Notes: a model not told the origin generated them from the sequence alone. Numbered from the stretch's first letter, positions 8,284-18,404 are shown. The stretch: DNA of 64,000 nt from Tubulanus polymorphus (GCF_964204645.1 NC_134034.1:2993814-3057813); one strand, 5' to 3'. A program made the numbers and translations.

Positions 8284-11200
8284 ATGAAATTCGTGTTTTG
8301 CTTGGTTTTATGCGTGACGGCGCTGGCGGTATCTGAAGCGTGTTCGTGCGACCCGACGGTAGATGTAAGCGACTACAGTCGTTATGACTTTGGTTAGTTT
8401 GTGTAGTTAGAGGTCGAACGGTGAATCAATTGATATCTATGCCTTTTAGAATAATTTGGAGGGCAAGATAAGAAATAAGATGGCAAGCTGATGTAGATAT
8501 TACAAATATTTAATAAATTTCCATTTTATACAGAAATTTTCAAACGGGCGTGAACAGGAAAGAACGAAATTAGAAATAATTTCTTTTTCTAATTTCGACA
8601 TAGAAAAAAAGACAAGAGTAAAAATTGTATTTTGCATTGGATTCAAGTGATAAGAGGGATTTAAAAAAAGTTACTTTTGAATAGAAAAAAGAACGAATTT
8701 CAAAAAAAATCTAATTTTTCAAATTGTTGATTTTTGCAGAATTCCGTGAGGCAGACCTAAATCGATCATGAGGATATTCAGTGATCTTTTATTGATAATA
8801 ATTTGTGTTTTCCCATATTTTCATCCAATGCACGCTTTTCTAGGATCGGACTAGCTGACTATTAGTACTAACCTAGCCGTAAAAAATAGGTTTTCGAGAC
8901 AGCGAACGAATGTTTTCTTTAAGGGATTTTAAGTTGATTCTTAGAGACAAACCAATTGACCAACCTGGGGAGGGAAAAATGTAACTCCCGATGCTTAAAT
9001 ATATATATATATATATATATATATATATATATATATATATATATATATATATATATATATATATATATATATATATATATATATATATATATATATATAT
9101 ATATATATATATATATATATATATATATATATATATATACTCATTAGAAAATGAGATTTTTACTGTTTTTGCTTCTATGGATTTTCACCGAACCAATTCC
9201 GTATATACTCCGACACTGATTTATTGGACTATATTCAAACTAGTTTGAATGTACCTCCATTCGTTCTTGGTATATCATAATAATTAGAACAGCTTCTATC
9301 CTGTATCGACTTGATATATTCCAGTGGTGCGAGCTCGGGTGAAGAGGGAACGCGTTAAGAACGGAATGCGTAAATATGTAGTGAAAATAAAGGAAATATT
9401 CGAACAAGTAGGTAACAAAACAAGAGCTTTACGCATTTCTGTGTTTAGTATCCGTAGATAGGTCCAGTGCTGAATTCTTCGTGAAATATCTTGAATGCAT
9501 TCCCAAAGCCATAATCATATACGCCTGATGACGCAGGCCGCGATTTTCATGAGGGTGGAACTTTTTTGTTGAAAGCGGAACTGTTTGTAAGCTGCTCACA
9601 CAAAGTCGGGTCCTGGGATTGCCCGCGCAGGAAACTATCTAAAATCAGATGCAAGAGCATTATCACAACTTCTAGCATATTTGGGATGCACATTTTGGTT
9701 TATTTCCTACAATTTGGTCCCAAATATAAGTTTCGCAACAAGTCCATATTTTGAACGAAAACGAATGAAAAAGTGTTAGCAATGAGCAATCTTTTGAAAT
9801 CGATGCTCAATATTTTCTCAAGACCAGCATCTGGGTGAAACTTCGTCGACGGGCGGGGAGGGGGGTTCTTTCGGACTCCCGAGTCCCCCTCCCCTAATAA
9901 GGGCCTGTGTGGCTATCTGTTAAGAGTCGAAACGTTGCTCTAAACATGGTTGATACTCTCTCATTTCTTCGAGAACTTTCCGTCTTTTGCTTAGATAATT
10001 GCGGGATTTATTACGTACGTTCCAAATGGGTTCTTTCATCCAATGACTAATCGCCGATGACAATATATACCGACACGCGTCATTCATAGATTTTAGCATC
10101 ATTTATGCTATTTGCTGATTGCTCTAACAATTCACAAACCTTTTTCGATTTCTTCACGCGTCCCTCCATCTAAGTATTTTTGTATTTCTATAATTAGGCG
10201 TATATTACAATTCAAAATGTTAAATGGATCTACATTATCGATTGTTATAATTATCATTTTAACATATTCGTAAATGAAAAACGTATATCATTTGCAGCCC
10301 CCAAATATGGTCACGTACGGGGGTGGCGGTAACAAGTTGAATATCTATACTAATTCAGAATCGAGTCTATGCGGAATTCGCCTAACAGTAGGCAGCCTGT
10401 ATGTGCTCGGCGGTAAGTACCATAAAAGTCATCTATGCTCTTCTATTGTTAGTCAGGTATCGGCACTGTTACTGCGGCAAGCGAGGATTCCGTGCCGGTT
10501 ATTGTAGATTCATTTCTATTTCCATTCGTCGGTTTGAAATACTTGGTTGCACGATGTGCGAGTGTGATGACGCGCTGTGATGCGTCCGGGTGATACGGCC
10601 GAGACTGCTTCCAGTCTCTCCGCGTAACCCAATTCGATACCGGCACCGCTACTGTGGCAATCGAGTATCCGCCAGGTTCGCTAGTGGTTACTCGGTCACC
10701 GCGCTTCAATTTCTTCTACATTTCATTTAAATTCGAATCAACTTTTCTTCGGCAAATCTTTTTTTAGTAAAACTATACCATAAAATCAGCGGGCGATGCC
10801 AATTTGAATTTGAAACAGATACATTTGGTGACTTGTTTCACAAAATTTCCGTTTGGGAGCCTAAAAATCAAGTTCTAAGTCCATTGAAAATGAACTAATT
10901 TTCGCTATCTACAACTGAGTTGCATTGTTGCGCCATCTGGTTTGTGCCGGTACCCCATCATTTTGTCAATTTTATTTCCTTATGTCTGTACGTCTGTTAT
11001 AACATTCAATAATGTGACATTTTTCCATGAAGAATTTCAATTTCAAAATTTCCAGGTTTATTAGTCGACTCTTTGGGACACCAGATGGCACAACGATACA
11101 CTCAGTAAGGTTATCTTAAGTTTTAGTTTAGGGGACTAAAGAATTCGGCAATGAACCTGGAATTGATTGTATCGTAGTGCCATCTGGGGCCGGTATTTCA

Positions 11201-15614: not shown

Positions 15615-18404
15615 ATGAAATTCGTGTTCTGCTTTGTTTTATGCGTGGCGGCGCTGGCGGTCTCGGAAGCCTTTTCCTGCGACCCGTTGCTTGCTGAAGA
15701 TGATTTTTGTCAATATGATTTTGGTAAGTTTACATGGTTAGAGTTCGAATGGTTCGGGTATTATGAATGATTCAATTAATATTTGGCCATTTTTTCAATT
15801 ATTTGGAATACTAACAGAAGGGGGAAAATGGAGTGGGCGAACGAAGGGAAAATGAAGAATTCTTTAAAAATTTTTCTATATAAATAAAAAAAGGTGTCTA
15901 TGGTTTTAGGGTGAACGTATTTTTTCCGGGTCCGTTTATTTTGATATGTACATGGACCTTCATTTTCTCTATGTATTTCTTAGTAATGAGGACTTCGTGC
16001 CACCAGCTATCCCGCTAGATGGCGCGCGTAACTGTGCAACAACCCCGTCAAAATCTAGTTCATTTTCAATGACCTTTCATCTAGATTTTTAGCCTCCCTC
16101 GTCAGAAATTAGGTAAATCACTCATTTTGATAAACTCAGATGATCTTGAGGTTCATATTTAAGGTGGTTTTTACCGATCACCATTATGGATAGACTTTAA
16201 TCGAATATGAGAAGAGAAGAGTTGCTGTCTGGGTGCACACTAGCGAACCTGGTGAATCCTCGCTTGCCACAAGTGGAATCCTCGATTGCCACAGTCGAAC
16301 GCAAAGTCCTCATTAGAACACATTTCATCTAGTTTTATCATCTATGTTCCAGTGATGAAGGCACTGGTAAAAGCTGTACGCGATGTGAACGGAATACACA
16401 GATACCAAGTGAAAATAAGAAAATACTTTAAACAAGTAGGTAACAAAACAAGAAAAAAGGCTTAACAGGAATTTACGCATTTCGTACGCACGAAAATCAG
16501 TTCTAGGTCCAGTATATATATATAATATATATATATATATATATATATATATATATATATATATATATATATATATATATATATATATATATATATATAT
16601 ATATATATATATATATATATATATATATATACGTGTAATATTATTTGTAGCCTACTACGCAGATGAACACATTTGGCAAAAAAGACAAAATGCTGGATAT
16701 CTATGCCTATAAAGATACCAGATATGGAGTTACCCTAACAGAAGGAGACGTATACGTACTCGGTGGTAAGTACCGCTGAAGTAACCTATGACTTATCAGT
16801 AATCGAGAATCGGCACCACTACTGTGGCAAGCGGTATGAATTATTACTGGTGTCATTACTATCATTCCACTATCGGGCGCACTTAGGTTATGTGATTTAT
16901 TCTACGATTTAACTAATTATAGTTAGTCGTATATTCGCCAACTAGGTAAAACCGTATACCGGTTAGTCGGAACTGAAGTCCGAAAATAGCTACAGTTCGA
17001 AACTATTGTTCCAAGATGGACGATTAGTGGTGCAATGCGTTAAACCGAAGCGCGTTATTAGTCGTCGAACTGACAGTCGTCGAACGAAAACCGAAATATG
17101 GGGTATCCGATTCTTGGTATCCCATTGGGGTAGCCGCAAAACCAGCTATCCCACCAGATGGCGGGACGAGCAGTAGGTCGTCCGTTGTCTGAACTCCCAA
17201 CTTCTTTCAACTCTGAACTACTTTCGTAAATGATTGATTCGTTCAAGACAAAATTCATTCCGTTTTAATTGAAATGTAGAAGAAATCGAACGTAGGCAAA
17301 AACCGTAAAGTTTCCCAAGTCTCTGTTTATAACGCATGCGCATTAGGAAGTGTTGGGGAAATCCTCTAAGTCCAGAAATTGGTCGCGTGCGCATGCGTCG
17401 CTACATGTGTATTTTTTCCTAAACTGGGTCATGTCAGAACTCTGAAACATAGAACTATAACGGAATGAACCTGCGTGAACTTTTGCGCAGCGGGAAGGCG
17501 CAGTTTGTTTGGTCACTTAAGACTCTTCATGATCCTCTTAGAGGATCATTTGTATTTTTGGGAATGACAGGTGTTCAAGTGGTCTTGCCATAAGCTAAAA
17601 ATCTAAGATATATATCGGTATATTATAAAGGATGAATGTATTTTTTTGCTACACATTCGGGATTCGAACCTAATAGCACTTAAAAGTAAATCCTGGGGCT
17701 ATCAAAGTTCATTATTTCATATTCGGGATGCTATCACTTTTTTACTCGGCAAACAATAACCCAGTGACACTTTAATCATCAAAGTTCATGTCGTAACGCT
17801 TGAAATACGATCAGTAATTTTCGGGTTTCGAATCTGATAGCGCCGCTTATAAGATGAACAGCGTAAATAAGATCAATATTTTTACGGGATTCGAACCTAA
17901 TGGAAACTACAGCGACTATTAGTCATTAAAGGTTACATGTAGCTCACATGTAGTGCCGCATGCGCAATGTGCCGCTTTCTCGACTAAGAGCAATTCCAGC
18001 ACTGACTAATGTGCATACGTTAGGTAGAAACGGAGACTTGGGAAACTTTACGGTTTTTGCCGAACGTAGACGATCAGCTGTCTACTAGCGACACCTGGTG
18101 CATCCTCGCCTGCCATGCGTGGAATCCCCGAATGCCACAGTAGTACTCCCATTAAGCCGCGTGACTTACTATAATTACGATTACGAATTGGGTGTATGCC
18201 TATGCCATCTGGTGTGTGCTGTAGGTACCACATTAATTAGATGTTTCTTTAAAATAACCGACGGATTTTCGTGATTTTATAGGGTCTTATGACGCAAAGA
18301 ACAAAAGGGCAACCATAGGCTCGTGTCAATATGCAAAGAAATTCAACTCGATCGCAAAAACAGAAAAACGGAAAATGAGAAACATCAAATGCGGTCAAAA
18401 CTAA
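15615..18404 (+). CDS. Single-domain TIMP/NTR-like secreted protein B, copy 1 (142 aa; Phe at mature position 1)
   Basis: Exons 15615-15723, 16353-16435, 16651-16765 and 18283-18404; the first three exon sizes are identical to gene A (109/83/115). Protein: [19 protein letters not shown]|[123 protein letters not shown]. Confidence 0.88.
15984..16315. mobile_element. MITE with TAATGAGGACTT/AAGTCCTCATTA TIRs (related inverted copy ~41110-41457)
   Basis: 12-bp TIR. Internal motifs (CTAGATGGCG, CTAGCGAACCTGGTGAATCCTCG) recur at many sites in the window. Confidence 0.7.
16513..16631. repeat. (AT)n microsatellite in TIMP-B intron (paralogues 31861-31992, 53905-54198)
   Basis: Direct reading. Confidence 0.97.
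17296..18060. mobile_element. 765-bp Mutator-like MITE with 9-bp TSD CGAACGTAG (also 32658-33422; empty site 54850-54858)
   Basis: Perfect TIR GCAAAAACCGTAAAGTTTCCCAAGTCTC, with CGAACGTAG on both flanks and a single CGAACGTAG in copy 3. Confidence 0.88.

Follow-up and report, generated by a model that had tools for sequence, protein, structure and literature searches.

A pair of adjacent genes in Tubulanus polymorphus (Nemertea) raises the question of how much of the N-domain of a tissue inhibitor of metalloproteinases (TIMP) an inhibitor needs, and of what may become of the same scaffold when a sister gene gives up a different part of it. The pair lies in a window of 64,000 nucleotides (G000:C10:2993814-3057813, within the 268-Mb assembly), in which an earlier note, made from the DNA alone, had described two tandem single-domain TIMP genes, here called A and B, with reciprocal loss of whole disulfide bonds. 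Both genes are already present in RefSeq as 'uncharacterized protein'. Exon models were read from the DNA and checked by script, while the RefSeq proteins were used for full-length searches, with P0002 standing in for B1, the first copy of B. Each gene consists of four exons with GT-AG borders and intron phases 1/0/1:

8284-8392, plus strand: gene A1 exon 1, signal peptide of 19 residues (...SEA), mature Cys1-Ser-Cys3-Asp-Pro and Ser13; the next intron is in phase 1
9325-9407, plus strand: gene A1 exon 2, strands A and B of the barrel
10298-10412, plus strand: gene A1 exon 3, SSLCG loop (Cys70) and YVLGG
11355-11422, plus strand: gene A1 exon 4, GSC (Cys98) and the end ...QYYAQVS, then a TAA stop
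about 15586/15587, plus strand: acceptor in the 5' untranslated region of B1
15615-15723, plus strand: gene B1 exon 1, signal peptide, Phe1-Ser-Cys3-Asp-Pro and, further on, Cys13
16353-16435, plus strand: gene B1 exon 2
16651-16765, plus strand: gene B1 exon 3, RYG in place of the xCG of the family (Cys70 to Tyr)
18283-18404, plus strand: gene B1 exon 4, GSC (Cys98) and the basic tail ...NIKCGQN, then a stop; Cys120 is the counterpart of Cys124 of TIMP-1

The A1 precursor of 124 residues is identical, residue for residue, to RefSeq XP_074659652.1 (P0001), and the B1 precursor of 142 residues differs at two positions from XP_074659461.1 (P0002). A and B are secreted single-domain proteins of the TIMP/NTR fold, an oligonucleotide/oligosaccharide-binding (OB) barrel. 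Both score above the Pfam cut-offs for TIMP (PF00965, MEROPS I35; 41 bits for A and 34.5 bits for B, cut-off 23.1) and for NTR (PF01759; 24.8 bits for A and 31.6 bits for B, cut-off 21.9). Single exons gave no Pfam match because the pieces, at 21-39 residues, are too short, and six-frame scans of the worm genome with the two profiles recovered the canonical TIMP and other NTR genes and missed the A/B locus. A word search with P0001 returned P0001 alone; an exhaustive search reached B and the relatives. At the level of single solved structures, phmmer aligned residues 20-118 of A to residues 1-102 of TIMP-2 (E = 7e-4). An AlphaFold2 model of A computed with an alignment of 46 sequences reached a predicted local distance difference test score (pLDDT) of 83.6 and a predicted TM-score (pTM) of 0.71; the model from the single sequence, with a pLDDT of 41.6, was unusable. 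The best PDB matches of the A model in Foldseek are TIMP-2, TIMP-1 and TIMP-3 (probability 1.00, TM-score relative to the query, TMq, of about 0.65, the length including the signal peptide), and the next are complement C3/C4/C5 (C345C), the NTR domain of PCOLCE and meteorin. The family assignment made in the earlier note is borne out by these scores for both proteins, and for A by a predicted fold that solved TIMPs match best.

Its statement that both proteins lack the TIMP C-domain holds as well. The open reading frames of A and B reach a stop no later than the end of the N-domain, the vertebrate-type C-domain with its six cysteines is absent, and tblastn of the window with 20-odd two-domain TIMPs detected neither a C-domain exon nor a relic of one. 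From A, the C-terminal helices that are present in every solved N-TIMP are missing in addition.

The cysteines set the two proteins apart. Canonical N-domains have three disulfides, joining positions 1-70, 3-99 and 13-124 (TIMP-1 numbering). Mature A (105 residues) has cysteines at positions 1, 3, 70 and 98, carries Ser13 and ends seven residues past Cys98; positions 13 and 124 are gone. Mature B (123 residues) begins with Phe1, keeps Cys3, Cys13, Cys98 and Cys120, and has tyrosine at the xCG position (RYG/RYA); positions 1 and 70 are gone. To judge from the residues present, each gene has lost one whole disulfide pair, and a different pair in each. This is what the earlier note had read from the DNA, including the LCG and GSC cysteines and the stop after QVS in A and the retained Cys13 and terminal IKC in B. 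At the junction of signal and mature sequence, where cleavage is predicted (marked by a slash), A reads ...SEA/CSC and B ...SEA/FSC, so that the predicted mature N-terminus carries Cys-X-Cys in A and not in B; a signal peptide ending in ...SEA/C recurs in many relatives. Cys98 and Cys120 of B are spaced by 22 residues, compared with 25 in two-domain TIMPs, and the segment between them aligns with the TIMP-2 segment PWDTLSTTQKKSL.

The replacement codons AGT (Ser), TTT (Phe) and TAT (Tyr) are each one base change away from TGT. If two of six cysteines were lost at random, a true pair would be removed with a probability of 1/5 per gene, and two different pairs with a probability of about 0.03. 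Cysteines are expected to go in pairs, however, where selection acts against free thiols in a secreted protein. The earlier note had also stressed that the pattern holds in all two copies of A and three of B. All copies do agree, but they are recent segmental duplicates (96-98% identity among all duplication copies), and their agreement therefore counts as one observation, not five, without independent support from the individual copies.

In order to assign a direction to these changes, we surveyed the cysteines of 46 relatives, single-domain ones included. Position 1 is a cysteine in all 46, and the xCG cysteine is absent from one only, a hookworm protein. Loss of the cysteine at position 13 occurs in about eight, and a sixth cysteine 16-35 residues past the fifth is found in nearly all of them, single-domain proteins too. 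Since nearly all of the relatives keep six cysteines, the six-cysteine state is ancestral and the patterns of A and B are derived; neither pattern was found among the 46 relatives retrieved.

What these losses would mean for function depends on the way in which TIMPs inhibit. In these inhibitors, the Cys1-Cys70 bridge holds residues 1-5 to the loop that ends in Cys70, and the two make up the wedge inserted into the cleft of the protease; the zinc is bound by residue 1 through its alpha-amino and carbonyl groups, residue 2 reaches into the S1' pocket, and an N-TIMP domain on its own still inhibits (PMC3679795). The earlier note had named Cys1 as the chelator of the catalytic zinc; binding is through its backbone amino and carbonyl groups and not through the thiol (PMC3679795). 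Phe1 in B therefore removes the C1-C70 clamp and not the chelating atoms. All elements of the inhibitory wedge are kept in A (Cys1, Ser2 as in TIMP-2, Cys3, Pro5 and the SSLCG loop), and B keeps Ser2-Cys3-Asp4-Pro5 without the clamp. The isoelectric point (pI) of B is 9.5, with a net charge of +10 or +11, which agrees with its earlier description as very basic; this is not unique to it, as A is also basic (pI 9.1, net charge +5). Possible targets exist in the form of at least eight matrix metalloproteinase (MMP; Peptidase_M10) loci in the genome, with M10 genes on contigs C2, C4, C8 and C9 among them and none near the A/B locus.

We propose the following course of events. The common ancestor of A and B would, by comparison with the outgroups, have had the usual six N-domain cysteines. 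A would then have lost Cys13, now Ser, together with the whole C-terminal helical segment carrying the partner cysteine, and in B Phe would have taken the place of Cys1 and Tyr that of its xCG-loop partner. In A, cleavage at ...SEA/C would expose Cys1-Ser2-Cys3-x-Pro5, which the Cys1-Cys70 bridge would clamp to the SSLCG loop, and the protein would block metzincin active sites in the way N-TIMPs do, as a minimal form of 105 residues and two disulfides. B would retain a full N-domain and the two bridges that make no contact with the wedge, and might serve another role, for example binding matrix, polyanions or another partner. The complete wedge points to A as probably a minimal metzincin inhibitor. 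B, without the clamp and with more basic charge than A, is unlikely to be a classical inhibitor and appears to have evolved about twice as fast as A. As a whole, the best explanation of the locus is a tandem TIMP-fold pair in which A is a minimal inhibitor and B is not a classical tight-binding MMP inhibitor; we give it a probability of roughly 0.55. That both proteins are functional, with the TIMP scaffold divided between the smallest natural TIMP-type inhibitor (A) and a barrel freed from inhibition (B), is a more doubtful extension that we put forward tentatively. If it were true, A would show that the wedge and a bare barrel suffice (105 residues, two bridges, no C-terminal helices), the basic surface and tail of B would have brought it a new capacity for binding, and the reciprocal loss of bridges would amount to an experiment of nature that assigns a function to each disulfide.

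The history of the pair can be followed in the tree and in the DNA. A and B have 54% of their residues in common, and their signal peptides are identical except at 2 of 19 positions. In a maximum-likelihood tree they are sisters (support 90/87), with a stem of 0.79 changes per column for B versus 0.37 for A, a difference of about twofold. The A+B clade groups with short single-domain relatives and not with the canonical two-domain clade, the deep nodes being weak. T. polymorphus has one canonical two-domain TIMP, encoded on the minus strand of contig C3 at about 6.1-10.3 kb (locus L020). The end of the first exon of that gene coincides in position and phase with the end of exon 1 in A and B, and the gene has no intron at the YLxxG/x position, where A and B carry intron 3. 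A and B are a lineage-specific tandem pair that was later multiplied by recent segmental duplication. Synonymous divergence (dS) between A and B is about 1 and their split is therefore old, compared with which the duplicated gene copies are, by their near-identity, young. Every A/B-like exon of the 268-Mb genome falls within the window, which holds two full copies of A, one fragment of A (exon 4 only) and three copies of B:

30967-33766, plus strand: gene B2, exons 30967-31075, 31700-31782, 32012-32126 and 33645-33766; RefSeq XP_074659461.1 (P0002)
46141-49172, plus strand: gene A2, exons 46141-46249, 47073-47155, 48048-48162 and 49105-49172; RefSeq XP_074659177.1 (P0048)
53011-55197, plus strand: gene B3, exons 53011-53119, 53745-53827, 54218-54332 and 55076-55197; C-terminal part of the 250-residue XP_074659176.1 (P0049)
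about 26741-26808, plus strand: orphan exon 4 of A, just inside the nested-duplication junction at 26142; exons 1-3 of A are absent there
5902-43762 (about 37.8 kb), no strand assigned: unit 1 of a tandem segmental duplication
from 43763, alignable up to 62948: unit 2 of the tandem segmental duplication
10757-19696, copied at 26142-35099: nested duplication inside unit 1, with a unit of 15.4 kb

The A2 protein differs from A1 by two residues. Of the RefSeq models for B, XP_074659461.1 (B2) bears an N-terminal extension of 12 residues from an upstream exon, and XP_074659176.1 fuses B3 to a distant upstream exon; such 5'-extended models suggest spliced transcripts that enter the 5' acceptor of B. 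Judged by contig depth, the duplication copies may all be real or may be partly haplotypic.

Between A and B, the DNA is alignable around the exons only, the final similar block being cut off sharply at 11403/18331, just past the GSCQY codons. The tail of A may have been lost either by a point nonsense mutation or by a rearrangement. The 3' flank of A was also considered as a decayed B coding tail, which was rejected, the local alignment being no better than shuffles (p 0.07-0.11).

The earlier note had regarded the pair as maintained by selection, a claim that we retain in a weaker form. Between A1 and A2, the exons differ at 3 of 375 sites (0.8%), compared with 103 of 2933 non-coding sites (3.5%; Fisher p = 0.003), and the ratio of non-synonymous to synonymous divergence (dN/dS) between A and B is 0.36. 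For the copies of B, about 4 synonymous and 3 non-synonymous events correspond to an omega of about 0.2 (one-sided binomial p about 0.04, a hand estimate), but B exons are no better conserved among the copies than B introns. Support for constraint on both A and B is thus modest, and weaker for B.

The equal divergence of B exons and introns is one of several observations that weigh against the proposed explanation. By sequence, the top match of B among solved TIMPs is TIMP-2, and it is weak (E = 0.2); the putative NTR fold of B is taken from its 54% identity to A and from Pfam, and the stability of A without its C-terminal helices is a prediction only. B1 stands outside the two-member RefSeq protein cluster of B. 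A search of public runs with a 10-kb stretch, which is about 8% exon and can hide a small mRNA, returned three DNA-like runs and no RNA match. A run from 2015 labelled 'RNA?' contained none of the words of the 10-kb query and nothing over 48000-53900. The public-run contigs over 48000-53900 cross introns and intergenic DNA and have no exon-exon joints; they are DNA-like, and the outcome of the run search is not evidence of silence. Contigs encoding P0001 are not on record, and the A/B protein clusters comprise RefSeq and UniRef members only, with none from assembled public runs.

Among the alternatives, the one that survives best is that neither A nor B is a protease inhibitor and that both have another role (binding, signalling, defence), the cysteine changes reflecting a relaxed need for the inhibitor architecture. 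Some hookworm single-domain relatives, which also weigh against the proposed explanation, are immunomodulatory and not inhibitory (PMC3679795, PMC2678263). AceES-2, of netrin-like fold with two disulfides, does not inhibit MMPs (PMC3679795), and Ac-TMP-1 acts on dendritic cells (PMC2678263). The position of the A+B clade, nearer the short single-domain relatives than the canonical clade at weak deep nodes, would fit such a role, as would the surroundings of the locus, which lies amid other small secreted-protein genes. Against this stand the wedge of A, from which no element is missing, and the inhibitory activity of isolated N-TIMP domains (PMC3679795), and we consider the alternative unlikely.

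Still less probable, in our estimate, is that B is degenerating into a pseudogene, a duplicate in which the loss of Cys1 and Cys70 was neutral. The doubled stem length of B and the similar divergence of its exons and introns would fit decay, as would the status of its copies in the databases, where B1 is outside the RefSeq cluster and B3 appears only in the 250-residue read-through model; the public-run search with its mostly intronic 10-kb query yielded no RNA evidence for B. However, open frames and splice sites are intact in 3 of 3 copies, RefSeq proteins are predicted from two of them, and B has kept the signal peptide and Ser2-Cys3-Asp4-Pro5 in common with A. Exactly one pair of cysteines has gone, so that their number is still even, and both the A/B dN/dS of 0.36 and the 4 synonymous versus 3 non-synonymous events among the copies argue against neutrality.

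Finally, it is very unlikely that A is not truncated at all and that the donor-like CAA/GTAAGT at 11414-11419, inside its last codons, joins a further exon with possibly a fifth cysteine: the site fits the donor consensus and is retained in all of A1, A2 and the orphan exon 4, and a RefSeq model shows read-through splicing onto the 5' acceptor of B, yet QVS is the end of both RefSeq models of A, whose cluster contains no isoforms, tblastn with B and the 20-odd two-domain TIMPs found no tail- or C-domain-like exon downstream of A, Ser13 is consistent with loss of the partner cysteine, and the A/B similarity breaks off past the GSCQY codons.

The remainder of the window, which contains no N gaps, has about 40% GC and carries microsatellites, among them an (AT)n tract in intron 2 of B. 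A minisatellite of 19 nucleotides lies at 264-1400. Two others recur in each duplication unit, one of 29 nucleotides at 20726-21221 and 57377-58046 and one of 21 nucleotides at 19557-19801, 34939-35120 and 56246-56406. About 530 nucleotides upstream of the B1 start codon, an inverted repeat of 178 nucleotides (14661-14838 and 14909-15086, 88% complementary, spacer of 70 nucleotides) is found in 3 of 3 repeat copies; it looks like a foldback element or one akin to a miniature inverted-repeat transposable element (MITE) and could be relevant to the regulation of B. For the 'ttcgaacc' repeats in intron 3 of B, an origin from a tRNA or a short interspersed nuclear element (SINE) was rejected, ARAGORN returning zero matches. 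A complete open reading frame of 99 residues lies at 35523-35822 on the plus strand, with a signal peptide, dibasic sites and a basic, cysteine-containing C-terminal peptide; a Pfam scan gave it no match. Its stop codon overlaps a TG/GTAA donor, and XP_074659176.1 links it, over gene A2 and a distance of about 17 kb, to the 5' acceptor of B3, a join that looks like a read-through or chimeric model.

Returning to A as a probable minimal inhibitor and B as its probably non-classical sister, we compared the pair with known proteins of the family. With the vertebrate TIMP N-domain (human TIMP-2, PDB 1BR9/2TMP) it has in common the OB-barrel/NTR fold, the xSxCG loop, the YxLxG strand and the predicted Cys3-Cys99 bridge; A in addition has Cys-Ser-Cys-x-Pro straight after the predicted signal-peptide cleavage site and a cysteine numbering (1, 3, 70, 98) near that of TIMP-1. 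Unlike vertebrate TIMPs, to which identity is about 20-25%, A and B have no C-domain and only two of the three N-domain bridges each, A ending seven residues past the counterpart of Cys99 without C-terminal helices and B lacking Cys1 and Cys70. Single-domain TIMPs are standard in nematodes (PMC3679795). The invertebrate single-domain proteins (Ac-TMP-1/-2 and the bivalve 'metalloproteinase inhibitor' homologues) resemble the Tubulanus pair in being secreted, restricted to the N-domain and often multigene (PMC3679795); nearly all of those retrieved, however, keep six cysteines, whereas A and B have four each in complementary sets.

A parallel to the reduced forms comes from hookworms. AceES-2 of Ancylostoma ceylanicum (PDB 3NSW) has a netrin/TIMP-like fold with two disulfides only (PMC3679795), one of which, in contrast to A, is a unique Cys77-Cys84 bridge. 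The related A. caninum NTR protein P0018, too, has neither the Cys13 nor the xCG cysteine and stops a few residues past the Cys99 counterpart. This hookworm relative (AceES-2/P0018) is a distant match to A (E about 1e-5, 30% identity) and belongs to another phylum, and the two-disulfide forms look like independent reductions. For B, the comparison is with TIMP-like proteins without Cys-X-Cys in cnidarians and echinoderms, presumed to be non-inhibitory (PMC4860685, PMC8467561). They share with B the absence of Cys1; B, by contrast, keeps Ser2-Cys3-Asp-Pro, has lost the exact partner cysteine and adjoins a sister gene that bears Cys1.

Single-domain TIMPs, CxC-less TIMP-like proteins and the two-disulfide netrin-like AceES-2 have thus already been described; what is new is that two neighbouring sister genes have complementary patterns, and that A is so short. 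With the pair, Nemertea joins the phyla with expanded single-domain TIMP-like families. Should A turn out to be active, it would offer a natural template for minimal TIMP-type inhibitors, already an aim of protein engineers, and the A/B pair would allow the structural part played by each of the three N-domain bridges to be told apart in a single genome; otherwise the locus would be a tidy, ordinary example of a secreted-protein family in which tandem duplication was followed by the loss of cysteines in pairs.

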